A stretch of DNA of 64,000 nucleotides. Origin: Paraphysomonas bandaiensis (Eukaryota > Protista > Chrysophyceae). The first letter of the stretch is position 1. The number at the start of each line of letters is the position of its first letter. Below are positions 11,546 to 61,333 of the stretch, one piece after another. The notes beneath the pieces were generated by a model that had not been told where the DNA came from, did no database searches, and worked only from the letters and a program-made list of their open reading frames with translations. The position numbers and the translations under genes are program-made. The DNA lies in the NCBI GenBank assembly GCA_965644295.1, contig CBFFRP010000290.1, positions 43,121-107,120 on the forward strand, read 5' to 3'.

Positions 11546-11839
11546 GTTCGCAGTAACTATGGTCGAATATTGATATATGCCTCTAACGGATATGACGTTC
11601 AAGGAGAATAGTAGAGTATTCTAACAGTGTAAAGTGACAATTTCCCTGTAAAATGGTATTTTTATTATAGCAAAGTGCCGGTTTTTGTGTGAAGCCTAAA
11701 GCTTCACATATGCATTGAATATGATTATCTACTATATATTTGTCCGTATTCGAGGCATATGTGAAGCTTTTGGCTTCACACTAGGGGTTTTTAGATGAGG
11801 AAAAAACCCATAGAGCTTCACATATGCAGTCCATACATA

Positions 11840-29698: not shown

Positions 29699-30920
29699 AA
29701 TAATGAGATTGGGTTGCTTCTATGAAATTTTAGTGCCTCGCTGATATAAGATAAATAACTAATATCGTGACGAAACTACTGTAAATGGCACCTAAAGTAC
29801 ACTGTTTTACTAATTACTTGTAACCTCTAGAACTACAACTTTGGCAACATGTTATTCTCGTACATGTAAATGCAAATGCTAGCACGTAGCTTTTCAAATT
29901 CGCAATTTAAAATTTAAATTTTTTTATTAAAAGAAAATTTAGACAATTGAACAACTAGTAGCGCAGATAGCAAGTTAGTGCTGGGGTTATTATAGACCTA
30001 TTCAAATATCTCCTGATAGGTGTTGGATACCGATTATCTGGTTTTAGTAACAAACACGATTAACGATATACCTGAAGATTCAGCCAACCTAGGTTGTCTG
30101 CAAATGATGACATTGTTCAGTTGACTTATATTCGCTATATTCATATAAATATAATGCCATGACGCATCCACCAAATAGAAAAGTAAAGTAGATGATGTTT
30201 ATAATTTCGCTTCCACTCTACAAGAGCAAAAACTGCTATATTTTGTAAAGTAAGATAATTGACTGCATAAAATCACCACTGCACTTCTTGGAGCACTGAC
30301 AATGTTGGTTGAATCAAACTCCATGGGATGTATAACGCCGACTCATGTGTATCGGTATATGTGGCACGCATTCCACTCAGCATCATCTCGTTCAATGGTC
30401 AACTTTAACAAGAAAATAACACCATAGCGCATACAGAAGACATTGGTCATACCTCATTTGTCGAGATAGATACCTACTGCTGCAAGTATTTCTTTGTGCG
30501 AATTCGCAATTGCAATTTTAATATTGACCACTTGAGTACAGAGCCTTCGTCCACGATGAATGTCATGAATAAAAAAAGAGGGAGCGCTAATCTCTGCATC
30601 CAGAAATACACTTTTCACATACTGCGACCATCTCAGCATGTTTCTCCAAAGATCAACTCCTCAGTAAATATCATATCTAACCATATAAATTGTGCTGCAT
30701 GCAATATGAATACAGTGGTATGAACCATCGAAACAGAGCGACATCAGTACAGATGAATGAGAGCCATGAAGGCCAGTCATATCAATAGCGCCACCATACT
30801 ATCCCAATGTAACTCCTACTAACACACCCCTTACAAGAGAGAACACAGTGCTGTAAGTAATCCGGCACATCGCTCCATATCTTAGCTATCTAGTACATCA
30901 TACACCACGTCATACAGCAG

Positions 30921-32507
30921 TACATACATACATACATACATACATACATACATACATACATACATACATACATACATACATACATACATACATACATACA
31001 TACATACATACATACATACATACATACATACATACATACATACATACATACATACATACATACATACATACATACATACATACATACATACAGTACATAC
31101 ATACATACATACATACATACATACATACATACATACATACATACATACATACATACATACATACATACATACATACATACATACATACATACATACATAC
31201 ATACATACATACATACATACATACATACATACATACATACATACATACATACATACATACATACATACATACATACATACATACATACATACATACATAC
31301 ATACATACATACATACATACATACATACATACATACATACATACATACATACATACATACATACATACATACATACATACATACATACATACATACATAC
31401 ATACATACATACATACATACATACATACATACATACATACATACATACATACATACATACATACATACATACATACATACATACATACATACATACATAC
31501 ATACATACATACATACATACATACATACATACATACATACATACATACATACATACATACATACATACATACATACATACATACATACATACATACATAC
31601 ATACATACATACATACATACATACATACATACATACATACATACATACATACATACATACATACATACATACATACATACATACATACATACATACATAC
31701 ATACATACATACATACATACATACATACATACATACATACATACATACATACATACATACATACATACATACATACATACATACATACATACATACATAC
31801 ATACATACATACATACATACATACATACATACATACATACATACATACATACATACATACATACATACATACATACATACATACATACATACATACATAC
31901 ATACATACATACATACATACATACATACATACATACATACATACATACATACATACATACATACATACATACATACATACATACATACATACATACATAC
32001 ATACATACATACATACATACATACATACATACATACATACATACATACATACATACATACATACATACATACATACATACATACATACATACATACATAC
32101 ATACATACATACATACATACATACATACATACATACATACATACATACATACATACATACATACATACATACATACATACATACATACATACATACATAC
32201 ATACATACATACATACATACATACATACATACATACATACATACATGCATACATACATACATACATACATACATACATACATACATACATACATACATAC
32301 ATACATACATACATACATACATACATACATACATACATACATACATACATACATACATACATACATACATACATACATACATACATACATACATACATAC
32401 ATACATACATACATACATACATACATACATACATACATACATACATACATACATACATACATACATACATACATACATACATACATACATACATACATAC
32501 ATACATA
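30921..32507. repeat. ~1.59-kb (TACA)n microsatellite
   Basis: Near-perfect run with interruptions only near 31091 and 32247. Confidence 0.99.
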
Positions 32508-32567
32508 GTAACTGCAGTTATGTAACATATTTCTTAGTCGCATCCTTTTCCAGCCTACACACACACA

Positions 32568-34074
32568 ATGTCTACTAGTGCTGGTATTCTTGACCCTAGG
32601 GCCCATGCATCTGGTGCTGGTGAGTCCTCTATGTTTGGGTCTGGGTATATAGTGGATCCTATGGAAGCTGAGAGGTTCGTGGAGGGAATCAGAAAGTTCG
32701 ATCTTGAGGAGGTAGGATCATCTGCCTGGATGCGTCAACATGAAGTGTTGGAGAAGTTGAATCTTCAAGCTCATCAGAGTGCGATGACGAGATCTGATGA
32801 GTATATTCTGGAGTCAGTTCTCACTTTTGGTAAATTGGAGGTCCTCATTTACGACTTATTGGTTATTGAGGCGTGGAAGGAGTACGTGTATCCTTTACTT
32901 GTGGATAAACTAGCTGGTAGAAACTCTATGCGGTTGTATTTTATACTCTATCACGAAGCCACTGTGATCAATCTTCTAGAAGTGTTTCTCTATCACAAGC
33001 ACGTGTGTGAATCTGGAGGAGAAAAATTACTCGAACTAGTCGATTATGTCGCCCGTAAAATGACCCGTCTGAATGGAGGCTACGATTTCTCATACATGGA
33101 CGAATTAGACACAAGTATGACGGGTGTAAGCGAGGACTCTGCCAAGGAGTTTGCAGAGTCCCTTCAGCACCGCCGACCGACAGATGACCTTCGTAGACAG
33201 CTTACAGAGATCGAATTCCGTATTTGTGTTTCTGCTTGCTCTGTTGCAAGGTACTCTCAATTTTCGTTGATTTAACTGCTATTGATACGTTCTCGCGTAG
33301 GTTCCTCTGCGAACACTCTGATAACCTTCCGCTCAGTGTTGTGAGCCGTATATGCGACACCCACGATCTACTTATGCTTTTCATTCCCCTAATAGAAAAC
33401 CCTCCCTGGACACGTCGTCTTCCAAATGGTGTGTATTTTCAGCCCACTTTTTCATAAAATTGGAAGCTCTGATTATATCATTTAGGAAAGTGGCAAAAAC
33501 TTGTGGATTTCAAGTGGCAGGATGTACAACCCATTGACTTGTTGAAGATTACCAGACTTGAAGGTCAACCGTGGATTTCGCTTTACTATTTGATGGCCAA
33601 ACAGGTTTTCCGGGAACGTTACCACCTTAATTCATTCCGAAAAGGGCAGGTAAGATAGTACATGGATGTTTGGTATTACTGTGATGTTCAATATAGATTC
33701 TACGCGTTCGCAAGTACCTCTCCGAGGTTATGCTCGACCAACTCCCGTTTTTGGTTGATATTCAACGCTACATGGATGAACTCGCTATTACAGAGGTTCC
33801 AGAGCCTGTTGGGGGCGCAAGTAGCAATATTTTCATGTTCCAACAAGTGTCAGTAATGCGTGAAGGGCTCCTGAAAGGAAAAGAGTGGGAGACCGTGGCA
33901 AATACTCAGATGGATACCGTATTCACGATGACAGATAAAGACGATCCTGATCTTCGGAGGATGGCGGAGTTATACGCAGACGATGCGGTAGAGGGTGTTT
34001 TAGAGCCACCTATACCCCAAGAAGGAGAAGAAGATGATTTGGAAGAAATATCATCCCAGCTCCGGCAAAGTTGA
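32568..34074 (+). CDS. ZMYND10: ZMYND10/BLU-like axonemal dynein assembly factor lacking the MYND finger (4 exons)
   Basis: EVGSSAWMRQHEVLEKLNLQAH, YFILYHEATVINLLE, THDLLMLFIPLIENPPW, LEGQPWISLY, LDQLPFLVDIQRYMDEL. Confidence 0.85.
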
Positions 34075-34933: not shown

Positions 34934-37900
34934 TATTGAACTACAACCAACTCCTACGTGCGTACTTGAAGTTTGGTAAAGCCAATCGCTAGTAGTTATC
35001 CTGTATTCTATGTAGCAATGAAATACAGAATATACATGACTACAGTATAGGAGTAGCTATTACAAGTATACAAAGAAACTGAAAATATAGTAGCTGTTAA
35101 AGATATGATTTGTAGAACAGAATGTTGATGTTGGTGAATGACGTGGTTCCTAACTCATAGGGCTACAACATTATAAACTTACTATATCTCCTATAATATC
35201 AATCAGTCAATATTGCACTAACTATAAGCGTAAGTTAATATGGCAGCGGATGGAAATTTCACGAATGTCGCCTCAGGCTCAAAGGTACCTCCCTTCGAGG
35301 AACTGAACTTCAAGAAATTCAAGAAGTTCTTCACCTCATTCCTCATGAGACACAATCGAGCTCATCTTGTCCTCTCAAAGGATAAACCAAGGCACATTCA
35401 TGATCTAGACTCTACAGTCCCAGCGGGAGCTCATATGACTGATGCACAGAAGAAGCGACTAGGCAAAGCGAAGAAACTCTGGAACACCCGGAACGAGACC
35501 GCGTACTCCTTCCTGATGGAAGTGTGCAATGCTCACCCAAAAGCAGGCACAACAGCGGCTCTCTACGAAGGAAGGACAGCAAAAGGGTTACTACAGGCAC
35601 TGGAAGAGAGATTTCTCAATGTTGAAAAGAATACAGTACAGGCAGAGATCACAAAGTTCAATTCAATGAAGATTACCTCAAGTCAGTCAGGAGCAGAGTT
35701 CGTCGACAGCGTTGAAGCCCAGGCCAAGATTCTCGAGAATCTAGGTCGTGAAGTCACGGAAGACGACAAGCTCACTCGACTAAAGGAAGGTCTCACAGAC
35801 AAGAGATATTCCCAACTAGCACACAGCCTGTATACAGCAAGCGATGTGACATACGCAAGAGCAAGCAGCCTAATCAAAGGGTATGAAAACACATCATTCG
35901 GCAAGCATGCGTTGCAAAATTCAGGGGAAGACAGTGTAAATCAAGCAGTGGATGACAGTAAATGGAAAGAGCACAAGAGAAAGGGCAGATGCAATAAGTG
36001 CAAGAAACTTGGCCACTTTGCTAGGGAGTGCAAGACTCCAGAACATGTCATAAAGAGGATGAAGGGGACAAGATCACAGAGAAAAGATAGAGATCACAGA
36101 AACAGGGGTGATAACAAAACAAAGCTACCTGTGTGTGAGATATGTGACATCCCAGGCCATCAGACTAAAGACTGCTTCCACTTGAAGACTGCTAAAGCTG
36201 CAGTGGTCAGTTCTAAACGGGGGCGAGACTCTAGAAGGGAAACGGCACCCTACAAGAACAAGAAGAAACCGCGAGTGTCTGTACATGATTCAGAAGATGA
36301 AGCGGGATATGAATCAATGATATGTGTGGAAGAAGAGGTGAATCTAGCACAGAGCATGTCAGATGTTATTTATTTAGACAGCGGGTGCAACAAGATGATC
36401 CTTACCTCCAAAAACCACATGACCAACCTTCAGCGCGCTGATAGGCAGATGTCCACAGCGAACAAAGGTAAACTGTCAATACACAGTGTTGGCGATGTAG
36501 GAAGCTTTAAGAAGGTGTACTACGCACCTGAAGCAAGTAAGAACCTCGTAGATATGAAGAGTATCACAGATAGGGGCTGTGTTGTGACGTTCGATAATGA
36601 TGAAGTCGTCATTCGAAATAAGACTACGAACAAGACACTCATTAGACAGAGAAGTGTTAATGGATTATATCCAGTTCGACTCGAAGACTTACTTCAGCTT
36701 GGAGAAGAATCCTCAGCAGCACTTGAGGAGCAGGGATTTGATGACCAGCGAGTTCTATGGCACTAAAGACTTGGCCATGTCAACTATGATAAACTGACTG
36801 AGTCCGACCGCCGAGGCCTAGTTGATGGAATAAATCTGGACAAGAAATATTTCAGGAAAAAACATAAAAAAACGATATGCAAATGTAATACCTGCATGCG
36901 ATCGAAACTCACTAGAAAAAACTTCAGGACTCCACGCCAGCTGATGAACTTAGACAACAACCCAAAGGAGAGAGGGGTGCTCAGTGCAGATACGATGGAA
37001 GTCCTAAACACGCCATCGATGGAAGGCTACAAACATGTGTTACTATTCAAGCACAGTGATGCAAAACATGTATGGGCTTATGGCTTAAAAAACAAGACTG
37101 GGAGTGAAGTGTTAAAGTGTATGAAGGACATGGTAGAGACCCAACTTGTCAAAGAAGGATTGCAACTACGACGATATCATGCAGATGGCGCAGGAGAACT
37201 TGTAGGGCAACATGTCAGGCAGTACTTACGTGAAACCAACAGCACAAGGACTGTACAGGTTACTTGGACTCCACGTGACACACCCGAAATGAATTCGCTA
37301 TCGGAACGCACTAATCGTACAGTGAAGGAGATGGTCCTTGCTATATTGCTCGATAGTGGCATGCCATCAGTATTCTGGTTCAAAGCAGTCTTGCATGCTG
37401 TATATCTGATCAACAGGTTACCTACGAAGACAACGAAAGGATACATCTCACCTTTTGAGTATATTACTGGAACCGCACCAGATGTGAGTGACTTGAAGAT
37501 CTGGGGCTGCAAGGCATGGGCTATTGTGCCGAAGGAGCAGCGCCGCAAAGAGTGGAAAGAAAAGGGAAAGCCTGGATACTATATGGGACAATGTCAACAA
37601 CCTGTTGGACACCAAATATATATTCCAGACCTGAATGCTATTATTGTTGCGGTCAATGCACAGTTTGATGAGTCTATTCCAGAGCGTTCACAGGAGTATT
37701 TCGACGAAATAGATAATCTACAAATTGACACCTCAGAAACAGCAGAGAGTGTAAATGATTATCAGTACCTGGTTGGCCTCAGACATCTTGATGGACACCT
37801 GTGCTATGTTACCACCAGAGTGATAGAGAGAAGAGGAGTCATTGTTGCATATAGGAAACTTGATACGGAAGGAAATACTACCGAGGAGCAAACTCCGATT

Positions 37901-39812
37901 CATATCAAAGATGTAGTAAAGATGACTCACTCTACAAAGTGTCAGACCGACAAGTTTAATAATTTGCGAAATGAGTTGGATCAGACTTGTAATGACAGTG
38001 ACAATGAGCAGAGGACTCCTGACCGCTCATATCGGGGCGCATCTTCAACAGGTGGGGCAGATCGAAATCCCAGAACTGAAAAACGACCTCGAAAAAAACG
38101 GCACATTGTTAACGTTGGTGTCCTCGGCGATGTCTCATTGTTTCTTGATTCCTCCAACAGCACAATTAAAGAGCCACAGACTCTAGCAGAAGCAAAGAAG
38201 ACTCCACAGAGAACATACTGGATTGAAGCTACCAGGAAGGAGGTGCACAAGCTTGAACGAAGGACATGCTGGAAGATTGTCCGAAGGCCGAAACACCGAA
38301 AAATCATAAAATCTAAATTGGTCTTTAAAGTAAAGCGCGACCATCTTGGAAAAATTAAGAAGTTCAAAGTTCGACTTGTAGCGAAAGGGTTTACTCAAGA
38401 ACAAGGAGTCGACTATAATGAGACATTCTCCCCAGTAGCTAAAGGTGTATCATTTAGGCTAGCACTGGCACTGGCTCTGCGATACAATTTGCAACTCCGT
38501 CAACTCGATGTAGAAACGGCATTTCCGTATGCAGATCTGGACGAAGATGTGTTTATGTCTCCACCTGCAGGAATAGATGTTCCACAAGGCTGTTGCTTGA
38601 AGATTCTGAAGAGTTTGTATGGCCTAAAACAAGCGCCTCGAAATTGGCATTCAATGCTGAAGGACAGTATAAAGGCGATGGGGTATAAACAATGTGTTCT
38701 TGACCCATGTTTATTTGTCCTCAAGGGCACTGATACTAACCTACATATGATACTTGTGTATGTAGATGATATCATTGTGCTCAGCTCTGACAGCCGTCAT
38801 ATTGAAGAAGTCATCAACGCTTTTAAGACTCAATATGCCATGCAAGATATGGGGGATCTTAAGCATTATTTAGGTCTTACCATTGAGCGTCATAATGGCC
38901 AGATTAAGTTACATCAGTCTGCGTATGCTAAAGATGTTGTGGCCAGATTCAATCACTTGTTGTCAGAAAAGAAGAGACGGTGCAAGGCAACCACACCTCT
39001 ACCACCTGGCCTAAAGTTGTCCAAGGATGCAAAAGAGGAAGAAACTCGAAAACAGAGAGAATACGTTGATGCATTTCCCTATCAATCTGTTATTGGTGCC
39101 TTAATGTATTTGGCAGTGCATACTAGACCAGACATGGCATATACAGTAAATCTTCTCTCCCGGTTCACCACAAGACCCACGTACGCTGCATGTCAAGCTG
39201 CTCTGCATACTTTATTGTATTTAGAAAATACAGTTGATCAAGGTATCATATTTCCTAATTTCACAGATGAAGACCCTCTATGTGTGTACTCTGATGCAGA
39301 TTGGGCCGGAGATCTGGATACATGCAGATCCACTACAGGGTATATCGTATATCTGTGGGGTGCTCCAATTGCATGGCAGTCCAGGCTGCAGCAAACAGTG
39401 GCTACGTCGACTATGGAAGCTGAATATATGGCTGCATATGCTGCAATTCAGGAGATTGTATGGATACGAGGGGTGATGACAGAGCTCGGAATTCGTGGAT
39501 TTGAGCTCAGTAAGAATGCGTCTCCAACAATCTTGAATATGGACAGCAAGAGTGCGATTGATCTAGCTCAGAATCCGGTAAATCATAAACGTTCCAAGCA
39601 TATTCGGATCAAGTATCATTGGATTCGAGAGCAAGTGGGAGACTGTATCGTCAGGCTGAATCATGTGCCAACGGCAGAGATGACAGCAGACGTGATGACT
39701 AAAGCCTTGTCCGAGAAGCTGCACTATCAGCATGTGCACACTATGGTATCGCACTAAGTAGACTTGCTTGTTACAGTATATTCTGATATGTTCATTGAGT
39801 GGGAGTATTGAA
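34934..39812 (+). mobile_element. Near-complete Ty1/Copia retrotransposon; probable 5' LTR 34934-35170, 3' LTR lost after 7 bp
   Basis: Full gag-PR-IN-RT-RH order. The polypurine tract GAGTGGGAG (39797-39805) is followed by TATTGAA, which also opens the candidate 5' LTR (ending CAACA at 35170). LTR limits are tentative. Confidence 0.88.
35240..39757 (+). pseudogene. Copia Gag-Pol with a single in-frame TAA (36764-36766)
   Basis: Two CCHC knuckles, YLDSGC protease, LWH*RLGH...CNTC, HADGAGE, SERTNRT, QLDVETAF, YGLKQAP, YVDDII, YSDADWAG, EAEY, ADVMTK; both ORFs are in the same frame. Confidence 0.92.
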
Positions 39813-41220
39813 AAAAACGGGGAGGGAGGAAGAAGGACAAGCCTCTTTTCTACCCCACTGCCCCTCAAGGGGCCTCTTCTCTTCGAGTGTTTCCAATTAC
39901 AACCTTCGGTTGTAATTCCTTCTCTTTGCTAATTTAACTTTATATATTTTTAATTACTTTATATATTATTAATAACTTTTAATTACTTTATATATTATTT
40001 ATATTCTTAAATAAAATTAATAACTTTATATATTTTTTATAATGTTTATAATAAAAAGTAATATAGATAGTAAAGTAGATTTAATAAGTAGATTTAATAG
40101 TAGATATAGAGAGAGGGAAAAATTAAAATGAAAAATAATTTAAATTTATAAGGTTTGTAAAACCCCGGGATTCTACCATTAAAACTACTTATTAAATCTA
40201 CTTTGTTATCTATATGACTTTTTTATAATAATGTATAATGGCAATGCTTAAAGCTCTGGAATGTAGTTGTAGTGATATAATGGCGAATATGCTTAAAGCT
40301 CTGGAATGTAGTTGTAGTGATATAATGGCGAAGCTTTAAGCAAAAACTCATAAAACCTTGAATTCTAATTTAAATATATATAAAATGGTTTAAAAAGAAA
40401 TTATTATATACATATATATATATTACAATGGCTGAAGAATGGAAAGTGATTGATGGATACAACAATAATTACAGTATATCAAACAAAGGAAATATAAAGA
40501 ACAATAAGACAGAAAGAATATTAAAGCAAACTATAAATAGAAACGGATACAATATATTTAGTCTCTATGTGAATAGAAAGAAAAAAACAGTTGAGATTCA
40601 TAGATTAGTGGCTTTAACATTCATTCCGAATCCAGAAAATAAACCCCATGTAGACCATATAAATAATAACAAAATAGACAACAATGTTAATAATTTGAGA
40701 TGGGCCACTCGATCGGAAAATCAACATAACCAAAAATTGAGCAAAGCAAATACATCCGGCGTGAAAGGCGTATCATATAACAAAAGTAAAAAAAAGTGGG
40801 TTGCGCAAATACAATTAGACGGCATTGCAATTCACATTGGATATTTTGATACAATCGAAGAAGCAAAACAAGCAAGAATAAAAAGAGCGAATAAAGCATT
40901 CGGAGTCTTCATAAATGCCTGTGAAAGAGAATAAGAATCCTACATAACAATAACAATGAATATAATGAATACGACACATATAACCAAACAAAGACAATAT
41001 ACCTGATATGCACTCATAATGACATCATCATATTTCCTTTATTTCCATGCTTGTTATATATCACAATGATATAGACACAATGACAATGAATATTATGAAT
41101 GAATATATATATAATGTATACATATACTCGTAGACACACAAACAACACAACAGCATCACAACAACAACACACAAATACAGAAAATATACAGACTAAAAAT
41201 ATTACATTTATATATTTAAA
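39813..41220. mobile_element. AT-rich virus-like island (possible terminus of a Polinton-like virus or other endogenous dsDNA virus)
   Basis: Abrupt switch to a GC-rich hairpin cluster, then very AT-rich DNA with inverted and direct repeats and an intronless phage/giant-virus-type HNH gene. No capsid, polymerase or integrase gene is present. Confidence 0.55.
40428..40934 (+). CDS. NUMOD4-HNH-AP2 homing-endonuclease-like protein
   Basis: EEWKVIDGY..YSISNKG (NUMOD4); IHRLVA..F..VDHINNNKIDNNVNNLRWATRSENQHN (HNH); NTSGVKGVS...KWVAQI...IGYFDTIEEA (AP2-like). Confidence 0.93.
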   Translation: MAEEWKVIDGYNNNYSISNKGNIKNNKTERILKQTINRNGYNIFSLYVNRKKKTVEIHRLVALTFIPNPENKPHVDHINNNKIDNNVNNLRWATRSENQHNQKLSKANTSGVKGVSYNKSKKKWVAQIQLDGIAIHIGYFDTIEEAKQARIKRANKAFGVFINACERE

Positions 41221-41238
41221 TCATGTCATCACGTAGTA

Positions 41239-41341
41239 GGAAAGACGTTTGGAGTCGTTCCGGATGAAATAGTCTGTGGCGGCAGATGAAATAATCTGGT
41301 TCGATTCCCTATGCCGCCACATTGAAAAAAGGCGTTTTTCT
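41239..41341 (+). ncRNA. Candidate ~100-nt RNA polymerase III-type structured ncRNA
   Basis: TATA-like at about -30, A-box-like TGGAGTCGTTCCGG at +12, perfect B-box GGTTCGATTCC at +60, T5 at 41335-41339, complementary 5' and 3' ends and several internal stems. Confidence 0.5.
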
Positions 41342-41389
41342 GAAAAAAAAATGGAACTCAAATACTGTTAATGCTAGGCTTGGACCACA

Positions 41390-44103
41390 TTAACACGCAT
41401 GAGGGTTCCAAACCATTTCAAGTTGGTCTACTATGCATGGCTGACAGAGACCTATCAGAGTTAACACACGACGCTCCCCATCAAGTGCTGCGTCATTACC
41501 CGACATTGGTTTCACATCTGTCATCATAGCGACTTGTTTATCGTCATGTACCTCCAGATTACTGGACCGCCAAGTCTCACTCGGAGCATCCCACAAATCA
41601 TCATCATTGGGTACCTACCCATCATTATCATCCCACTCATCGTTATAGTTTCCTCCAGACTCATCGTAAGTATCTAGATGTGACACTTGCGAAACCCTTG
41701 GTTTAGAATCAACACGACTGTTCAACGAAGGTTTGTTGGACTGTTGAGAGAATAGTTCCTTTCTCCTCTTAAGATAGTCCTCGTGCTTCTGTTGAAACAT
41801 CGTAGTCGACTCCATAGGTAACTGTCGGTACGCGATGGTTACTTGATAATGATCCAAGAGTACAGCCGAATACTCTTTGAAAAATTCGCTCATAGAGTCA
41901 AATTTATTAGTCGACATGCACCCCAACACATACTTAACATAGGTCCCGTCATTCAAAGTCTTAAAGAGTCTTATCAATCCGTACTCTTTGTCATCGATAC
42001 GAGGACACCATGTTTTGTTTGAGACCAACATGATAGACAACATCGTTTGGAACGACTGCATCAAGTTCAATTGCTGATGATAGAATGCCTCAAAAGTCAC
42101 AGCATTTACATACTTCCAGTCCATGATCTGGATATGTTTCAAGGAATCTCTGAGTTCATTATAAAATGCCACGCAATTGAACACCTTGGTCTCCTGAGCC
42201 ACAATGAGAAGCAAATCCGAAACATCCATTTGTGCTAGCTGCGCATGTGTGATGCTGTACACATTCCGCAGATGTGCCTTCAAACTGGTTGAAAGTACCT
42301 TTTGAATTCGCACCTCAGTTTCTTCTTGCTCTTGAAACTCTAAGATGTCTTTGATCGCCTTCGCCACTTTACCCAACTTAAAGTCATTGATGCGAACATG
42401 ACACCTCCTTTCCTCTCTAGTTATGGTAACTGTTTTGGCACTAGCCACCTCAGAACTTTTCTTCAAATCCCTGAATAACTTGCCCGCTTTCTTGCCCTTA
42501 AAGATGTTATCCATGAGGGTAGGCACATCATTAACACCATCACCATCAACATCGGGATTCGAACCATCGTCCTCCTTGTTGCTATCTTCCTCCTGAGGAA
42601 TAATGCGAAACTTAGCCATGTTTTCCAGAGTGGAATACCTCGGCTGACGTTTGTGTTTCGACGTGCGCTTGGTAACCTTTTGCCGCTGATGTGAGCCCAC
42701 AGAAGCCTGAGACTGACTGCTCTCACCATCCTCAACATTTTGTACTCTATTCTCCAATATTTGCATCCTGCTGCTGAGGTTAGACACTGCAGTAGCCACC
42801 TCTGTAAAAGACTGAGACATGGCACGAACTGTATCCAAAATCTCCTGGTTTGGATTGATGTTTGGAGCAGAAGACTCCTGAACGACATCCTGCACACCTC
42901 CAGCCGCATCTTGTTTGGTTTCACCACTACCAGCGGCTTCCTGATCTTTCCCAGGAGTTTTCTTGCCGCCTCTCCTCGTTTTACCAGTCGGAGTAGACAT
43001 GGTTAATGAGAAGGACTTCCGCCTCAAAGACTATATCCACCAAACTTTTCCCTAACACACTGAGACAAGCAACCCTGGCAACTCCTAGAACCACTGACCC
43101 AGAACTCAACAACACACCAAGACACCACAAGACAAATCCCAAAGACAACCCTGCGTAAGAATCCAAAAACTCAACACTCAACACTCAACACTCAAACCCG
43201 TTGAACCCGTCGGATTTGTACAAGTGACAACAGTTAACACACAGGCGGTATCCACGGTCGATTGACTTCGAAAAGAACCGAATTTCCCCAGTCACCACAC
43301 TGTGTATCAAACAATCACCACTGAACAAAGAGCCTAGAGAACAACTACTGACAACTCACACCCAGAGAACAACAGACAACCAACAACCACAAGCAACCGA
43401 AGGCAACAGACAACAAGCCCAAAGAATCAAGCCCAAAGAAGCGTGTCGCAGTTAGTTTCTTATAAGAGTGTGAAACAACAGCGCAAAGACAGAAATTTCT
43501 GTACGAGCAGTAAAGTAAATATTTACTATAACAACACCCGGTTTGATAACCAGGGTGTTGGCTCGTAAACAATAAAACTACAACAACACCTACACTGAAC
43601 CAACAAGCACAGTAATAACGGTATTATTATTAAAACACTTTTTTCCAAGTTTAGACCTAAACTCAGTTAGTGACTCCCGCGAAGAGTCACCGCGCAATGG
43701 TATACCGCTGGCACCCAAGATCACTAGCACCAAGCTTTGGTCTAACTTAAAACAAGTGAGAAACACCATAGAAGCATATATGCACACACACACTCCTAAC
43801 ATGGTGCAACACACGTGGTATCATCACACCACCACAGGTTGCGTAACTCTTCAATCAAAAACTGAAAAATACACAGCAACCTGATAGGGAGTGACTCACC
43901 AGCATATGCCGAGAGTACACCGTATACTACGTATCTATACCCTACAAGAGACTGAAAACCCCATAATCCAGGAAATACATAAATACGGTACGTATAGTAC
44001 GTATAGTACGCATACCACATTGCAATCCAACCCCAATAAGCCTTGCATGAACACTCGTGCACCTCAAGTGTATAATAGCGACTTCTCTCCTTTGATGGTC
44101 ACA
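41390..44103 (-). mobile_element. 3'-truncated Gypsy-like element (leader/LTR region plus gag)
   Basis: The gag-like ORF 41615-43027 shares blocks with the 61334 Gag (KAIKDILEFQ vs RFLEDIAEFE; PRIDDKEYGLIRLF vs PLVTIKNGGSLETF); no pol. Limits are approximate. Confidence 0.6.
41615..43027 (-). CDS. Gypsy-like Gag (truncated)
   Basis: 470-aa ORF with an N-terminal coiled coil, similar to the Gag at 61334-63091. Confidence 0.6.
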   Translation of the reverse strand: MRRKSFSLTMSTPTGKTRRGGKKTPGKDQEAAGSGETKQDAAGGVQDVVQESSAPNINPNQEILDTVRAMSQSFTEVATAVSNLSSRMQILENRVQNVEDGESSQSQASVGSHQRQKVTKRTSKHKRQPRYSTLENMAKFRIIPQEEDSNKEDDGSNPDVDGDGVNDVPTLMDNIFKGKKAGKLFRDLKKSSEVASAKTVTITREERRCHVRINDFKLGKVAKAIKDILEFQEQEETEVRIQKVLSTSLKAHLRNVYSITHAQLAQMDVSDLLLIVAQETKVFNCVAFYNELRDSLKHIQIMDWKYVNAVTFEAFYHQQLNLMQSFQTMLSIMLVSNKTWCPRIDDKEYGLIRLFKTLNDGTYVKYVLGCMSTNKFDSMSEFFKEYSAVLLDHYQVTIAYRQLPMESTTMFQQKHEDYLKRRKELFSQQSNKPSLNSRVDSKPRVSQVSHLDTYDESGGNYNDEWDDNDG

Positions 44104-44444
44104 TGTACTTGCCCCCCTATAGGGTAGTACGGGTAATACATGTATGTATGTATATGGAAGTATATACTGCAACTGCTACACAGGAATACGGGCCCACATA
44201 ACTTTGATATAAATTTGCAGCAGGTTTCACATCGACCGAAGTCACCAGCAGCAGATCATAGTCGTACATCATCATCAGCAGATAAAAATTGGACATCATA
44301 CCCGAACGTTGGCTCAATATGTAGGTACACTGTGGTACATTACCAATGTCCAAATGGTGTTGCATAATATGTATTCTGAACGCAATGAAGGTCCTAAAGC
44401 AATATATAGGGTCCTGATATAGGGTCTTAAACCAACATAGGGTC

Positions 44445-45861
44445 CTAAAAGTCAATGTAACCATGCATGTGACTCAATAGCGTGATACTATAGCCACGTA
44501 GATAGGGCATGGGAAATGCCACGTGGTCACAGTCTCGTCCTTTTTGATAATCTGACGATGGACCACTGTCTTCATAATTTGCAAGTTGATCAGAGTGGTC
44601 GTGGAAATATTCGTTACTTTGAGTCTGGAATTCCACTCTCTTGAACTTCGGTTTTCCTCTTGTTGATGACTTGTTGTCGGAGGAGCTTTTCATCTCTTGA
44701 ATCTTCTCCCAGGAGTGCTTGCATTCCGATGCAATGTGCCCCTTTCCTCCGCATCTGAAGCACTTAATGTCTTTATCGGTTCTCTTATCATGTTTCTGTT
44801 TATTGGAGCGATATTTGGAAGAAGTCCCTCTTTTTCGCTTAAAATTGACTTTGCTGCGGGAAAATGGGGTTTTTGATGCTGCGAGGTGACTACAGTCAGT
44901 TTTTGTGTCTTCATTGTTGGATGATAGGAGCGTTCCAACAGACGAGCTTCCTAACCCGCGAAGACTGCGAATCAATACTTTATAATCATCAATTGGATGT
45001 AGCTGCAGATTAATTGCCAATTCTCGGTAAACCATGTTATCTTCTGAAACAATTCCCTGTCGTATTCGGGATATTAAGTCTTGGTCGTTGATCCGATGAC
45101 CATAATTGATAAGCTTGTTTTTGAGCTTTTCGATAGCGTCAAGAAAATTGATTATTGACTGACCTTTTTTGATTTTTATGCTCTGAAATTGACCAATCAG
45201 ATCGGTGATTACATCGTTAGTCGTTTTTTCTTTGAAGTGGGTTAGCAAATCGGTCCAGGCGGTTTTTCCGTCTCCATCGGGGACGTTTTCCAAAATCCCT
45301 TCGGCCTCTTCATCCTGGCCAATGACAGCGCTCGAAATGACAGACCATAGGTAATTATTACCTTCATCATAATATATATCGTTTCGTTTCGTGATACTGG
45401 TCGAGTCGATATTGATAATCTTCGTCATCTGAAATCTCTCCTTCTTCAGGTTCAGTTGGATGATCGTTTTGTAGGGTATAAACGATCTTGGGCTTTCTGT
45501 AAAACCATGCACGGCACTTCTTCTGCCACTTGGAGAAGTTCTTCGCGTCGAACTTTGGCATTGAGTCTTTCTGTTTTTCGGTTGTTGAATCCGAGTCGGT
45601 TGAGTCGTAACTTGTAACTTTAACTGACATCTCGCTACCAAATAAAGAATTGATCTTTATAATAGTAAAACAATGTTGTGATTATTAGAGTGTAAGTAAT
45701 GAACACGATAGAGTGAAAATTATAAATAACAATATAGAACGTACTATCATGCACAACGGAATAGTTAGAAGTGTAACTGATAATGACGACGTTATGATGA
45801 CGATCATGTATCTTGAACAGATACTATCATTAATTCAGTTCGTGATATATTTCATTGAACA
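44445..45861 (-). mobile_element. Copia gag relic with a frameshift and a probable 5' LTR (45674-45861)
   Basis: ORF 45367-45630 (PKFDAKNFSKW) shifts frame into 44445-45641 (DGKTAWTDL...CFRCGGKGHIASEC); an upstream segment is bounded TGTT...AACA. Confidence 0.75.
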
Positions 45862-52779: not shown

Positions 52780-55020
52780 GGGACATTGACTCGCACGCCT
52801 GGTGTGTCGACTACGTCACCACCTCTACAACATATCTTCGCTACAAGTGCGCATCCCCAGACTGCAAACTTTTTTAGTGCTTAACACACAAATACTTCCG
52901 ACACTACTCTACAAAGCCACCAAAGCCTCGTGGACCTATGATAGGTATCTTGACATAGACAAACTAATTGCACGTGCAGCCAGGAAAGTCCTCCGTCTAC
53001 CCCCAGGATACCCCACCGCCCTCATCTACCTACCCACGAAATACAAAGGACTAGGCCTGCGCAAGTTCTCCACCTGTGCCCAGACCCAAAAGTGGCACAC
53101 ACTCCAAAGGGCCATCACCCTTGGAGGGGAATCCAAGAGCGCCGCCATATCCATATTGCAACGTCACGATCACAACCACCCAAACCTCGACCTGTACATT
53201 ACCAGCCTGGTCCAATGGGGACAACAGCTCGGAATCCGACTGCAGCCCCCATCCCCGGCCACATCCCAATTCTGAGAAACCATCGACATGGTTCAATCAC
53301 AGCTCCAACTGCACGATAATCATCCACATGATTTTCAAGCCATCTTCACTGATGGTTCTTTTTCACTCGCACTAACCTCTCTCCTGCTCACCTACTAGTA
53401 GGTGATTCCCACACGCAGCCCGCAACGCACAACGGGGGGCAGCAATTGTCTGGCTTCCGCCCAAAACCAACTGGAGCACAGGACTAACCAAAATCCTCCG
53501 ACTTACAGCCCCTGAGCATACCCTACCTGGGCTCACCCCATACACCTACGAGACCCTGGCAATATGTCAGCAGCCCTCACGTTCTCTAAACTCATATCCC
53601 CCTCCGTACCTATGTGCACCGACTGCCAAGCAGTACAATCACGAACCACGGAAGCTCTCTCCCGTCGGCGGCGAGCCCTCGGCACAAAACCCCAGGGCAT
53701 CTTTTACGAATGCCTCGCCACAACAGATAATCACCGACAGCGGCCGATCCGATGGGTCCGCTCCCATCCAGAACGCCGAACACAAGATTGGAACAAATGG
53801 AACTACAATGACTACGGCATTTACATAGCTGACGCTGCCGCCAGTGGGGAGTGGTCGACGATAGACAAAATACTAGGCGGCACAAACTACAGCGTGGTCA
53901 CAACTGAGATCACACATCTCATCGACGAATTCTTCACTGCCGGCCAATGGCAATGGAGAAGATATGACAAATTCCTCCACACCGACTGCGGACCCATGCT
54001 CGGGGACGTCACCGAACTCCAACACCAATGGGACCTCCACCAATACATCCTCACGCGGGACGGCACGTACCCCACAAGTGCAACCCGAGACTCGCAGTAC
54101 TGGACACGCAGCGGAACCAGGCTTTTCCACACAAACTTCATCCCCTCAAGACAAATAACTCTCCCAAATGCTATGTCCCATTCCACGACCGCATTCGCGA
54201 AACAGCATACGTGTGGGACAAATCCTACGCGATGGGCAGAAATCGAGCCAAGGGCAAACAAGGAGACGAACTCACAACAGCAGCCAAATGTACAGATTGC
54301 GACCACAACTTGGACATCATGGCGCACATGCTCCTCCAATGCCCACACCCCGAGATCGCCCAAATACGTGAAAAAGCCTTCCACGCACAACAAACTCAGC
54401 TTACCAAACTCCATGAGAAACGACAACCCATCCCCTGGCTACACAATGCCCTACGTAGACACGCGAGGGCTGCTTGGGATCCCGACACACCTCAAGTTGT
54501 GAGATACTGGACCGGCCAACTAACAGCCTCGCAACTGGCTAACGCTTTCGGCCACAACATTTCCACCTCGATACTTGATCACCAGTTCCACAAGCTCGAA
54601 AACTCAGTCACCAAAATCCTGCTCCCTCTCTACAATGGAGGACTAAACATGCTCAAAAACAGAGGCTGTAGGTTTCACAGACTCGACGCGACAACAATGA
54701 CTCCACCCCCGGCTAACGCCAGCAGCTCACAACCACACCGCACACACTCCGCCACCAACCCGACGATCCTTCAGCTACTTAAAGTAACATCCACCCCCAG
54801 AGCCGTGCCCCCCAAGAGACCTCGTCCCCAACGCGGGCCTGTCAACCCGATCCGGAGGCAGACGACACTCATTCCCGACAGAACTCCAACCGCAACTAGC
54901 GAACCCAAAACCCCCGCTGCCACACATTCACAGAATGGCACGTCACCCCCCTCCCCCCGGCTCGCACACGGAACTGGACCACCAGACACACTACCCAAAG
55001 GAAGACCACCTGACTAAACG
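52780..55020 (+). mobile_element. 5'-truncated, frameshifted non-LTR retrotransposon (RT C-terminus, RNase H, Cys/His finger)
   Basis: ILPTLLY...ARKVLRLP...YLPTKYKGLGL; RNase H IFTDGS...YTYE...CTDCQA...WVRSH...IADAAA; CTDC...AHMLLQC; C/A-rich sense strand. Confidence 0.75.
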
Positions 55021-56135: not shown

Positions 56136-59100
56136 CAGAAGATTGACCACCGATATTATGTGCGATAAGATTGGGCTTGCGGATGGCAATTCCAGCAGAA
56201 CGATTTGTGACGAGAAAATTGACGAGAAGGATGTCCAATCTTAGATTAGTACTTGCGAAACATCGCCCAGTGGTATTTGCACCACAGGGTTGCAGATTCT
56301 AGTTTGATGACTACTTGTTTGACTCCATTTCTCGCAGACGAAGTAGTCTTTAACTTTTTGTTTAGATATGTACGCAACTCTTTGTCCGTTGTAAGTATGT
56401 ATTTGCGCACATTCTTATCATGATGTCTTTAGTGGTGTATATCGTTTCATTGGCGGAATCATATTTATACAGTTAAAAATATTGACACAATGTTTTCAAC
56501 TGAGTAATTGCAAGATGAAAGGGCTGTTTTCAGTATCGACCGTTCTGAAGATATTTGTATACTATGATTTAGATTTCGCACACTATTATAGTTATCCCCA
56601 TTTTGCGACCTGAATTGGGTTCAACAAAACGCTCATATAAATACGCAAATATAGACATTCAACTTCAATATTCGGTTCGAACATAAACTCTCTGCAAGGG
56701 CTAGGGAAATATATATTAGGGTGTACAGGCTTGTATAACCATTAATGGTAAAGGCTATTTATGGCCATTAATGGCCTTCCCCCATAAAATGGAAAAAAGC
56801 AATTCATTAATGGCCATAAAAATGGGGGAGAGATGTAGTGCCCATTAATGGCAATATCCATTAGGTAGTATCTTGTTGTCAGCACCAATGAGCACCGAGA
56901 GATAGTGTATGACGTGTATTGATTGCACAGTGTCTATATATTGTACAGTCATACTTCTACGTGTGTTATGCTCAGGCAGGGTGCACCGAGAGATAGTGTG
57001 TGACGTGTATTGGTTGTGTGATGGGTATATGTTGTATATTGTTATGCTACACTTCTATTCTCTCGTTGAGCCGAGTGCATGCAAGAGGCTCACGTTGTAC
57101 TAAGAGACAATAGTGTATCACGTGTATTGTTTGTGTGATGGCAATGGGGTGAACTACAGTACAATGTGAGTGAGAAAGTGATAAATATTCATGGACTTAG
57201 TGTAAAAGGAAAGTTATCATGATCGTACGTAAGTTGTATATTTAAATCACAAGTGGCTAGAAACAATGTAGCTACGAGTAGGGCAATGACTGCTGACTGC
57301 TGGCAACTACACATATTTCGCTCATCATGATGATCAATGGGTTGACAGTGCTAGTATGAGGGCAGATAACGTGGGTGCTGGTAAGCAAAAAGGCGCTTCT
57401 GTTACATCCTATGAGACTTAAAATTATAATAAAATTAATATTTTTTGTTGTCTCTAACCCTAATATCACAAATAGAATAGTTTCTTTAACATTTCTACTT
57501 AAATACTGTAAATACTCTTAAATTTCCCAAAATATCGTAAAATTCCCACGTTTGCATAATGTTTACTTCATGTAAAAATACGTGACAAGCCACGACCTTC
57601 CGGTCCATTATACCTATTTAAGTCATTTAAGCAATCTGTTTTAAGAATTCATATAAATTGGTGTGATAACATCACAATCATGTTGTACATGTTAACATGA
57701 ATTGATTATATACCACCTTTTCTAGTTTTAAATTCACAGCGCAGCCACTTGTCAGCATAAGCAATAAGAACACTATGTAATATATTATAATAATACAAAA
57801 AGATAAAAATATGTAAAGATTGTGAGTATAGTGAATAAGCAATAAACGGAGATTTTAATTTAAACGAGAAGAAATTACAACACGAGTGGCTCGATCATAT
57901 TTGCAGTGTGTACGTGACAACACATATATAATATAATGAACAAACGTTGCATTTTTAATACTTCTTATTAAATCGCCATTTGCTCAGAGTTCTCAGTCAT
58001 GTTGATCTGCAACTTCATCCATCTCTTGTTTATGTTCCCATTTTTTTCCCTCTTTTTTGCGTTGTTGCAACAAATATACCATTTATTGATGATATTATAG
58101 TTGCTGATGATGTTTAAGAACATTGTTCGCATTATTAGCTATAATCTCTGACCTGTAACATGGGAACGAACTGCTCATCATTGCTGTTAAATAGCTAGTA
58201 CTTTTAGTCTAATTATTAACACTTTCCATTTACTTCTTTCTAAAGCAATGAAGCAATAGTAATCAAACCATTAATGGCCATAAAAATGGGGGAAGCAAAA
58301 TGCCATTAATGATGCATTCCCCTATCAATCTGTTATTGGTGCCCTCTAACGTACTTGGCAGTGCATACTAGACCAGACATATGGCATATACAGTAAATCT
58401 TCTCTCCCGGTTCACCACTAAAGACCCACGTACGCTGCTTGTCAAGCTGCTCTGCATACTTTACTGTATTTAGAAAATACAGTTGATAAAGGTATTCTCT
58501 TCCCTAATTTCACAGATTGGGCCGGAGATCTTGATACCTGCAGATCCACTACAGGGTATATCATCGTATACCTGTGGGACGGGACATTGACTCGCACGCC
58601 TGGTGTGTCGACTACGTCACCACCTCTACAACATATCTTCGCTACAAGTGCGCATCCCCAGACTGCAAACTTTTTTAGTGCTTAACACACAAATACTTCC
58701 GACACTACTCTACAAAGCCACCAAAGCCTCGTGGACCTATGATAGGTATCTTGACATAGACAAACTAATTGCACGTGCAGCCAGGAAAGTCCTCCGTCTA
58801 CCCCCAGGATACCCCACCGCCCTCATCTACCTACCCACGAAATACAAAGGACTAGGCCTGCGCAAGTTCTCCACCTGTGCCCAGACCCAAAAGTGGCACA
58901 CACTCCAAAGGGCCATCACCCTTGGAGGGGAATCCAAGAGCGCCGCCATATCCATATTGCAACGTCACGATCACAACCACCCAAACCTCGACCTGTACAT
59001 TACCAGCCTGGTCCAATGGGGACAACAGCTCGGAATCCGACTGCAGCCCCCATCCCCGGCCACATCCCAATTCTGAGAAACCATCGACATGGTTCAATCA

Positions 59101-60596
59101 CAGCTCCAACTGCACGATAATCATCCACATGATTTTCAAGCCATCTTCACTGATGGTTCTTTTTCACTCGCACTAACCTCTCTCCTGCTCACCTACTAGT
59201 AGGTGATTCCCACACGCAGCCCGCAACGCACAACGGGGGGCAGCAATTGTCTGGCTTCCGCCCAAAACCAACTGGAGCACAGGACTAACCAAAATCCTCC
59301 GACTTACAGCCCCTGAGCATACCCTACCTGGGCTCACCCCATACACCTACGAGACCCTGGCAATATGTCAGCAGCCCTCACGTTCTCTAAACTCATATCC
59401 CCCTCCGTACCTATGTGCACCGACTGCCAAGCAGTACAATCACGAACCACGGAAGCTCTCTCCCGTCGGCGGCGAGCCCTCGGCACAAAACCCCAGGGCA
59501 TCTTTTACGAATGCCTCGCCACAACAGATAATCACCGACAGCGGCCGATCCGATGGGTCCGCTCCCATCCAGAACGCCGAACACAAGATTGGAACAAATG
59601 GAACTACAATGACTACGGCATTTACATAGCTGACGCTGCCGCCAGTGGGGAGTGGTCGACGATAGACAAAATACTAGGCGGCACAAACTACAGCGTGGTC
59701 ACAACTGAGATCACACATCTCATCGACGAATTCTTCACTGCCGGCCAATGGCAATGGAGAAGATATGACAAATTCCTCCACACCGACTGCGGACCCATGC
59801 TCGGGGACGTCACCGAACTCCAACACCAATGGGACCTCCACCAATACATCCTCACGCGGGACGGCACGTACCCCACAAGTGCAACCCGAGACTCGCAGTA
59901 CTGGACACGCAGCGGAACCAGGCTTTTCCACACAAACTTCATCCCCTCAAGACAAATAACTCTCCCAAATGCTATGTCCCATTCCACGACCGCATTCGCG
60001 AAACAGCATACGTGTGGGACAAATCCTACGCGATGGGCAGAAATCGAGCCAAGGGCAAACAAGGAGACGAACTCACAACAGCAGCCAAATGTACAGATTG
60101 CGACCACAACTTGGACATCATGGCGCACATGCTCCTCCAATGCCCACACCCCGAGATCGCCCAAATACGTGAAAAAGCCTTCCACGCACAACAAACTCAG
60201 CTTACCAAACTCCATGAGAAACGACAACCCATCCCCTGGCTACACAATGCCCTACGTAGACACGCGAGGGCTGCTTGGGATCCCGACACACCTCAAGTTG
60301 TGAGATACTGGACCGGCCAACTAACAGCCTCGCAACTGGCTAACGCTTTCGGCCACAACATTTCCACCTCGATACTTGATCACCAGTTCCACAAGCTCGA
60401 AAACTCAGTCACCAAAATCCTGCTCCCTCTCTACAATGGAGGACTAAACATGCTCAAAAACAGAGGCTGTAGGTTTCACAGACTCGACGCGACAACAATG
60501 ACTCCACCCCCGGCTAACGCCAGCAGCTCACAACCACACCGCACACACTCCGCCACCAACCCGACGATCCTTCAGCTACTTAAAGTAACATCCACC
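56136..60596. repeat. Unit 2 of the tandem duplication, cut by a Gypsy insertion
   Basis: Essentially identical to 50334-54795; identity ends at ...ACATCCACC|TGTCACG. Confidence 0.95.
58581..60596 (+). mobile_element. Duplicate of the RNase H LINE fragment
   Basis: ORFs 58603, 59365 and 59829 repeat 52802, 53564 and 54028. Confidence 0.75.
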
Positions 60597-61333
60597 TGTC
60601 ACGCAGCAGTATACACTGCGTGTATTTGTATATAGAATACTGTGCTGTATATAGTGTGTATATATCGTATATATCTGGAGCAGTATATGGTATATATATG
60701 GTATACATATGCATATAGAGGTTGTCATATACAGGGTATATTCACTGTATTTGGGACTTACCTTTATCAGTTTACGACATTCGAGGCTTTCAGTTTAGTA
60801 GCTGAGATACGTTTTTCAGTTTCTGACGGCGATTCACATTTGATTTGGACTGAAGTCCAGAACTTCGAAGTTTTAGTACAAAATACGTGATTTCGTAGAT
60901 AGTCGAAGTTTTCGTATGTGAATATTGGTTTTAGTACGTGAATATTGTTTTTCGAGTGTGAAGTGTTGATCGTAGTGTAGTGTTGATCTACGTTGAACGA
61001 GATGGGTGTTTGCTCATTCTTGTCGCTGACTTTATAATTTACTTTTCTTAAAGAGCACCTACGGTTTGTTAGTGTTTCTGGCAGTGCGCCCGTCGTTGCG
61101 CCCTGGACAGTATCGCAGCCCGCTGGCGGATACTATTTTGGTGGGTTGTAGAGTTTAGACAAGAGATCATCTTTTCTTGGTCCATTCAGAGTTGAGTCAC
61201 GGTTTGTGAGTCATCTGCGGGCACAGAAAAGTTACAGTAATATTACTTAGCTTAGCTTAGCAGTATATTTGTACCAAGTTAATATATATTGAGCCCAAGA
61301 GATAAGTGTGTTTAGTTTTCGTGTGATTGAGCC

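Follow-up and report, generated by a model that had tools for sequence, protein, structure and literature searches.

A structured sense-strand segment at the 3' end of an HNH endonuclease cassette in Paraphysomonas bandaiensis

The HNH cassette and its copies

The DNA analysed here, referred to as the window, is a 64,000-nucleotide (nt) stretch from the assembly of the chrysophyte Paraphysomonas bandaiensis (contig CBFFRP010000290.1, positions 43,121 to 107,120). It contains an AT-rich island with an intact gene for an HNH endonuclease. Downstream of this gene, on the same strand and without an open reading frame (ORF) in between, a segment starts 304 nt past the stop codon, with a GC content of 46% against about 27% in the surrounding island. 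This segment (41239-41341), which is the subject of the present analysis, was initially proposed to be a gene for a pseudoknot-capable RNA of about 100 nt, a transcript of RNA polymerase III (Pol III), belonging to an endogenous Polinton-like virus (PLV), to the HNH protein as its partner, or to the host as a vault-like RNA. The features of the island are collected in Table 1.

The protein encoded by the island matches the Pfam families NUMOD4 (3.5e-15) and HNH_3 (5.3e-9) as well as HNH families of PHROGs, and its AP2 domain scores 33.2 bits against a Pfam cut-off of 33.3. The closest solved structure is I-HmuI (1U3E, E 9e-20, residues 4-133), and the protein is classed as an I-HmuI-family HNH endonuclease. 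No sequence match to a solved ERF domain was obtained from its AP2 part. Relatives of I-HmuI are site-specific nickases, and the NUMOD4-HNH_3-AP2 form has been reported in a Symbiodinium PLV (PMC12220804). Nucleases that combine HNH and AP2 domains are likewise already known (PMC5318435). Proteins 76-90% identical to the one in the window were found only in marine metagenome assemblies of the ENA, several of them from Tara Oceans, where they lie on short contigs; overall, copies at 76-95% identity were met in such contigs, next to unrelated flanks. The gene is intact in 11 copies, and comparison of the window with the ten others gave synonymous divergences (dS) of 0.35-0.69. Because the ratio of nonsynonymous to synonymous divergence (dN/dS) is 0.13-0.46 in these comparisons, the gene is evidently under purifying selection.

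The ends of the island are defined by three related loci, L001, L003 and L006. Both L001 and L003 align with the window at 94-95% identity from 39810/39812 onward, and the flanks of the three to the left of this point are mutually unrelated, which gives a common left end with three unrelated flanks. The alignment with L006 runs to 41418 and then diverges, and the right end is thus common to two copies. Because of these left and right junctions, the stretch 39810-41418 is taken to be a unit, or cassette, that recurs beside different neighbours. A transposon with terminal inverted repeats or a target duplication was considered and rejected: the left end compared with the reverse complement of the right end scored at chance level (41 of 300 shuffles reached the score), and no target duplication was seen at the junctions. 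The possibility that the HNH gene is carried by a group I or group II intron was also set aside, as Rfam gave no match at either end and the flanks are non-coding and unrelated in three copies. A 10-nt string is common to the left junction (39806-39815) and to a bulge of the segment (41321-41330); it is borderline against shuffles (8/300) and is not kept in L006.

The AT-rich non-coding DNA of the cassette differs by 0-5% among the window, L001, L003 and L006, though the dS of the HNH gene is as high as given above; either very strong constraint or a recent exchange of modules would account for this low divergence. Some parts of the cassette do vary between copies. The 44-nt tandem unit is present in L001 too, and L003 has a different stretch at this place. 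The hairpin at 39895-39917 (10 bp) keeps its stem in L001 and L003, its tip being exchanged for a longer palindromic one. The ACA-rich tract is variable in length, with 29 extra bases in L006. Beyond the right end of the cassette, L006 carries a 21-nt spacer followed by an inverted copy of the last ~20 nt of the cassette (positions 897-964 of that locus), giving a long hairpin whose Rfam score is microRNA (miRNA)-like and far below threshold. In addition, positions 947-984 of L021 are identical to positions 1-38 of L008, two HNH contigs from different samples, which suggests neighbouring cassettes or alternative flanking modules.

Table 1. Features of the HNH cassette, in window coordinates; L001, L003 and L006 are related copies.
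Feature	Position	Strand	Description
Whole HNH cassette	39810..41418	+	~1.6 kb, about 27-31% GC, discrete repeated unit
GC-richer 5' end	39810..39930	+	Purine-rich tract, then hairpins 39860-39873 and 39895-39917
Tandem iterons	39918..40065	+	~19 nt, AT-rich, nearly invariant in L001 and L003
Inverted repeat	40053..40223	.	52-nt arms, 90% complementary, 67-nt spacer
Tandem 44-nt unit	40244..40332	+	Two perfect copies, starts 45 nt apart, upstream of HNH gene
HNH endonuclease gene, intact	40428..40934	+	168 aa, NUMOD4 + HNH_3 + AP2; sole gene of the cassette
Non-coding stretch, HNH stop to segment	40935..41238	+	ACA-rich tract (about 41141-41190) and conserved AT-rich block with TATA-like run 41209-41220; 95-100% identical to L006
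Segment (stem-loop 1)	41239..41341	+	Stems A and B, 10-bp inverted repeat, T-loop/B-box-like motif
Base stem A	41239-50 / 41330-41	+	12 bp, four G-U pairs, T5 run at 41335-39
Stem B	41251-57 / 41302-08	+	7 bp
Two local hairpins	41261-76, 41283-98	+	Identical 6-nt GAAATA loops; window copy only
Perfect 10-bp inverted repeat	41275-84 / 41312-21	+	Each 10-mer holds GCCGCC; 27 nt apart
T-loop/B-box-like 11-mer	41298-41308	+	
A9 run between the stem-loops	41343..41351	+	A10 in L006
Stem-loop 2	41352..41410	+	21 predicted pairs

Folding and conservation of the segment

The motifs listed in the original prediction (TATA-like run, B box, run of five T residues, stems and hairpins) are all present at the positions given in Table 1. 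On the + strand, the segment is predicted to fold into a long hairpin of -37.1 kcal/mol (z -3.98), and none of 200 shuffles folded as well; the - strand reaches -29.4 kcal/mol (z -3.6). When GC content is taken into account, 250 of 12,780 window stretches of the same size fold as well or better (2%; z -2.53). Eight of the 35 pairs are G-U on the + strand, which, with the better folding of that strand, bears out the argument that the element has the polarity of the HNH gene. The T5 run is the sole run of at least four T residues on the + strand in 41180-41420.

A helix crossing stem B, which had led to the proposal of a pseudoknot, is present and in fact extends to a perfect 10 bp. The pseudoknot itself was given up, because the 3-nt linker could hardly span a stem of ~15 bp; it seems preferable to regard the long hairpin and the helix that crosses stem B as rival folds. 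Of the two, the hairpin is the more stable in the window, by 4 kcal/mol over the alternative at -33.1 kcal/mol. Folded as DNA, the segment prefers the 10-bp helix. The GCCGCC string occurs nowhere else in the cassette, nor in 19 related loci examined, and the 8-mer TGCCGCCA occurs twice elsewhere in the window, once in each of two copies of an ORF set described below. A second copy of the segment was not found in the 64 kb.

Conservation was assessed on two copies, the window and L006, the latter being the only one of 12 related contigs looked up that reaches the segment. Between these two, identity amounts to 85% in the coding part, 95% in the 3' non-coding part, 100% in the ACA-rich tract, 95% in the upstream AT block including the TATA-like run, 75% in the segment and 97% in the A-run with the second stem-loop (41342-41418). 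The changes within the segment are unevenly distributed, with about 45 nt of the arms altered in L006 and about 58 nt nearly fixed. The base of stem A with the T5 run, the A-run that follows the segment, and a block of 13 nt surrounding the 10-mer's 5' copy are fixed in both copies. A block of 26 nt, in which the 10-mer's 3' copy lies together with the T-loop-like motif, is kept save two changed letters; the T-loop-type pentamer is invariant, and the two letters that follow it vary.

Despite the changes in its arms, the segment of L006 still folds into a long hairpin. Pairing in stem B is kept against the fixed 3' anchor through three exchanges (A-T to T-A, G-T to T-A and C-G to T-G), and in stem-loop 2 one pair is altered on both sides, from C-G in the window to U-A in L006. 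In stem A, one G-U pair is lost, and both sides have become shorter. The two GAAATA-loop hairpins, noted in the original prediction and present in the window, are absent in L006. G-U pairs make up 9 of the 38 pairs on the sense strand of L006, and there too the + strand folds better than the - strand. Altogether, a structured element on the HNH strand has been inherited with the HNH gene in a second copy, its pairing kept through changed letters.

Searches for further copies covered several collections. Three conserved strings and a gapped pattern, scanned exactly against IMG/VR, returned chance matches or nothing, and a protein-based search of this collection gave only relatives at 38-42% identity. 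In the JGI metagenomes, a 20-mer of stem-loop 2 had no match, and a gapped pattern of the fixed blocks had 100 matches, all of them GC-rich bacterial coding sequence or chance. Neither the C-terminal part of the HNH protein, used as a query for truncated gene calls, nor a spurious minus-strand ORF over the segment added anything, the former yielding no new copies and the latter no matches.

Interpretation of the segment

We tentatively read the segment as a cis-acting structured element of the sense strand that forms, together with stem-loop 2, the 3' tail of the HNH cassette; a probability of roughly 0.38 is assigned to this reading. It is supported by the mosaic conservation, since the segment is 75% identical between the copies against 95-100% for the neighbouring non-coding DNA and holds fixed blocks amid drifting arms. 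It is further supported by the pairs of stem B and stem-loop 2 that are kept through changes on both arms. A role as sense-strand RNA draws support from the G-U bias (8/35 and 9/38) and the better folding of the + strand in both copies. The discrete cassette with its common ends, the intact HNH gene in 11 copies, the location of the segment past the stop codon on the same strand, the restriction of GCCGCC to it and the virus-type genes beside HNH relatives are counted in favour of the tail as well. Most likely, the tail would act in the sense transcript, where the two stem-loops may set the 3' end of the HNH transcription unit and shield it. The closest parallel would be found in the transcripts of Mimiviridae, which are ended by hairpin-forming palindromes, more distant relatives of the HNH protein being located in virophage/PLV-type contigs. 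The fixed pair of 10-mers with GCCGCC and the T-loop-like motif could then be what a protein recognises, and this protein may be the endonuclease of the cassette, through its AP2 domain.

Several observations weigh against a cis-acting tail. The fold of L006 is not better than that of shuffles (z -1.76), and in this copy a fold combining stem A with the 10-bp helix is nearly equal to the hairpin (-31.7 and -32.0 kcal/mol, respectively), with a helix probability of 0.7. The RNAalifold consensus of the two copies is likewise the alternative fold with the 10-bp helix and not the hairpin. The covariation comprises three or four pairs in two copies, and the same paired changes could arise if the template is switched from one arm of a DNA palindrome to the other. 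Furthermore, the distance of 300 nt from the stop codon to the stem-loops is long for a virus-type terminator, and a hairpin merely marking an end would need no invariant 10-mers. The tail is also missing from L021 and L022, two members of the same HNH family that lose homology near 41157-41190.

The contexts of the HNH copies are mosaic. A 61% identical HNH relative (L005) lies on a contig with a Pox_A32-type ATPase, and a 56% identical one lies 27 nt from a V18-19 capsid-type gene; no homologue of the tail was found near either of them on these virophage/PLV-type contigs. Because L021, L022 and the 56-61% relatives are without it, the tail module is evidently not a general partner of this nuclease family, contrary to the linkage with NUMOD4-HNH-AP2 genes that had been envisaged. 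About 70-125 nt past the HNH stop, L005 does carry a GC-rich patch (706-765 of that locus) with a 4-bp stem, a 7-nt T-arm-like loop and then a T5 run. It was rejected as a homologue of the segment, the similarity being not significant and the fold no better than that of shuffles.

The original idea of an independent Pol III unit, in which the TATA-like box together with the internal B box drives an RNA of ~100 nt from about 41239 to the T5 run, is considered unlikely. Its product would have paired ends like other small Pol III RNAs, with a possible role as a precursor in the form of a hairpin or as the partner of a protein. Published rules (PMC10137851) agree with the geometry, in which the TATA-like run is found at -30/-23 from 41239 and a perfect B box at +60. 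The isolated T5 run and the 95% identity of the upstream block in L006 are in line with such a unit, as are the two variable letters of the motif, which fall partly on a free position of the consensus, and the fixed 3' arm opposite a drifting 5' arm, which is expected if one strand doubles as a promoter element. However, the upstream block is not special in this respect, since conservation is the same in every AT-rich non-coding part of the cassette. Using the consensuses TRGYnnARBGG for box A and GGTTCRAnYCY for box B (PMC10137851), the best box A match near the start was found to have 3 mismatches in the window (2 in L006, at a non-homologous place). Of random 56-nt window stretches, 50% have 3 mismatches in their best match, the modal value, and 40% have fewer; no A box thus stands above chance, and the A-box-like string pointed out earlier is not even among the best matches. 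The B box is perfect in the window but common there, with 4 perfect sites per 64 kb and a looser version of the motif (PMC5391098) once per 4 kb, and it has one mismatch in L006. L006 also contains a run of four T residues (T4) at positions 13-16, inside the putative RNA. Such a run would end Pol III transcription early in many eukaryotes. Rfam gave no match in the window at gathering score and, at E up to 10, only chance-level matches to small nucleolar RNA (snoRNA) and miRNA families, with no tRNA, virus-associated, vault, Y RNA or HEARO family among them, which speaks against a VA-like, vault-like or IscB-type RNA. A C/D snoRNA was dropped, as the matches stood at E 3-4 and L006 does not preserve the box-like letters. 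A more elaborate variant, namely a mobile HNH-nickase cassette with its own gene for a tRNA-like, two-fold small RNA (T-loop and 10-bp helix), transcribed by Pol III or a viral polymerase and functioning as the nickase's partner or as a hairpin from which small RNAs are made, appears very improbable; to our knowledge, no RNA-assisted HNH element of that type is known from eukaryotes or their viruses. Least credible is the idea that a tRNA gene, or a tRNA-derived short interspersed element (SINE), left a relic beside or together with the HNH gene, in which a T-arm-like motif and an acceptor-like helix would survive. The T-loop-like motif, followed after 3 nt by a strand that pairs 27 nt upstream, does give a minihelix-like outline, the module is separable from the HNH gene (as in L021 and L022), and the patch of L005 offers a weak, non-homologous T-arm-like counterpart with its own T5 run. 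Yet ARAGORN found no tRNA gene in the window, L006 and 11 other loci, and the Rfam tRNA model gave nothing at E up to 10. D arm and anticodon arm are missing, the T stem has 2 pairs only, the segment is single in the 64 kb, its conserved blocks met only GC-rich bacterial chance matches in IMG/VR and JGI, and the similarity of the L005 patch does not reach significance.

Two further explanations place the constraint in the DNA itself. The inverted 10-mers with GCCGCC could bind the AP2 domain of the cassette's nickase, as a recognition or nicking region or as a self-regulatory operator, which is regarded as distinctly unlikely. Both copies have the 10-mers as a perfect, unchanged inverted pair amid drifting letters, their GCCGCC is confined to this segment among the cassette and related AT-rich loci, and the 10-bp helix is the fold preferred by DNA. 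In plants, AP2/ERF domains bind the GCC box AGCCGCC, whose core is likewise GCCGCC (PMC9748296), and both HNH-AP2 nucleases (PMC5318435) and site-specific nickases among the relatives of I-HmuI (PMC12220804) are on record. On the other hand, with an AP2 match at the Pfam threshold and no solved ERF domain retrieved, plant ERFs are no guide to the binding specificity; a protein site in duplex DNA leaves the sense-strand G-U bias and the kept pairing of stems A and B unexplained, and the 8-mer recurs elsewhere in the window. The segment could also be a functionless, GC-richer palindrome kept by DNA-level processes such as template switching and module exchange, its motifs being coincidental. The fold rank in the window, merely in the top 2%, and the z-score of L006 agree with this, as do the mosaic contexts and an identity of 75%, which is near the free-drift expectation from a dS of 0.35-0.69. 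Such a palindrome is nevertheless very unlikely, given that about 58 nt are nearly fixed against 35-69% change at synonymous sites of the HNH gene, and that it is precisely the paired base, the pair of 10-mers and the T-loop-like motif that have stayed fixed.

Related systems and genomic surroundings

Among known systems, the I-HmuI family of HNH homing endonucleases, from phage SPO1 and either free-standing or intron-borne, is closest to the cassette in the domain order and structure match of its protein. In both cases a small selfish gene is accompanied by its own flanking non-coding DNA, with relatives in virophage/PLV-type contigs. The gene in the window differs by being carried in a fixed-end unit of 1.6 kb whose flanks are unrelated, one of them being Copia in a nuclear genome; its copies do not share one homologous site, and an intron was not detected. 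Descriptions of free-standing homing-endonuclease genes usually concern bare ORFs. The new part would be the packaging, a fixed-end, ultra-conserved 1.6-kb unit with a structured tail in eukaryotic nuclear DNA whose non-coding parts are far better kept than the synonymous sites of its gene, the protein family itself being known.

The tail, as read here, can be set beside the palindromes of Mimiviridae, in which, by the so-called hairpin rule, hairpin-forming palindromes end the transcripts (PMC4402537). Both lie on the sense strand downstream of a gene in an AT-rich context, with arms that drift while pairing is kept. The predicted stem-loops of the cassette are in contrast 300 nt from the stop codon, much larger, branched and provided with invariant blocks. 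With type 2 Pol III RNAs, namely tRNA-derived SINEs, 4.5S, vault and virus-associated RNAs (PMC10137851), the segment shares a B-box match, a TATA-like run near -30, an end in a T-run and paired ends, but it differs by the missing A box and Rfam match and by the internal T4 run of L006. Some resemblance to tRNA-like minihelices and T-loop modules is seen as well. Under the established rules for T-loops, the segment has a fixed T-loop-type pentamer, two variable letters and an adjoining 10-bp helix, but its T stem has 2 pairs, and it has no CCA end and no match by the tRNA detector. Finally, the guide RNAs of IscB/HEARO are also structured non-coding elements adjoining a gene with an HNH domain; here, however, the protein is a 168-aa I-HmuI-type nickase without RuvC, Rfam gives no match, and the module is absent in sister copies. 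Should the tail turn out to be a signal in RNA or a site that the nuclease recognises, it would illustrate how cassettes of this kind take expression or targeting modules of their own along among the genomes of giant viruses, virophages and hosts. Were it no more than a terminator-like palindrome, the finding would be ordinary.

By its gene content, the window is eukaryotic nuclear DNA. Among the 20 ORFs scanned against Pfam and PHROGs, cellular genes for an intron-free HSP70, an enolase-superfamily enzyme, a plastocyanin-domain protein and a PH-domain protein were recognised, along with Copia-type gag and pol. No gene for a capsid protein, packaging ATPase, polymerase or virus-type integrase was found among these ORFs, and the endogenous PLV to which the island had been ascribed was not recovered. 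The HNH island is instead a solitary 1.6-kb cassette amid retrotransposon remnants and ordinary cellular genes. It starts 50 nt past the stop of the Copia pol ORF and is bordered on the opposite side by a convergent second remnant with gag, lying exactly between the 3' sides of the two retroelement stretches (35240-39757 and 41615-45641). The Copia-type gag and pol in the region of these stretches are read in two ORFs, which implies at least one interruption, and neither an integrase-core match nor a pair of long terminal repeats (LTRs) was found for the neighbouring Copia in the window. An interpretation of the segment as an LTR of this element was dropped, there being no 5' copy and no LTR pair. 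The second gag is 25% identical and is followed by a 470-aa ORF without a known family.

Farther from the cassette, the same set of ORFs, without a Pfam family, occurs twice, at 52802-55017 and 58603-60635, 5801 nt apart and with 54% GC; the two stray copies of the 8-mer mentioned above lie in these sets. The stretch 30882-32606 is a low-complexity tract of 25% GC with a GC skew near -1, containing three overlapping long minus-strand ORFs and numerous identical units that form hairpins. Of the 103-nt hairpins in the window, the strongest are found at 11681-11783 and 14041-14143, both on the + strand, each with -53.0 kcal/mol and 2360 nt apart, which suggests a repeated palindromic element. The third-ranked one, at 43808-43910 on the - strand, reaches -50.4 kcal/mol.

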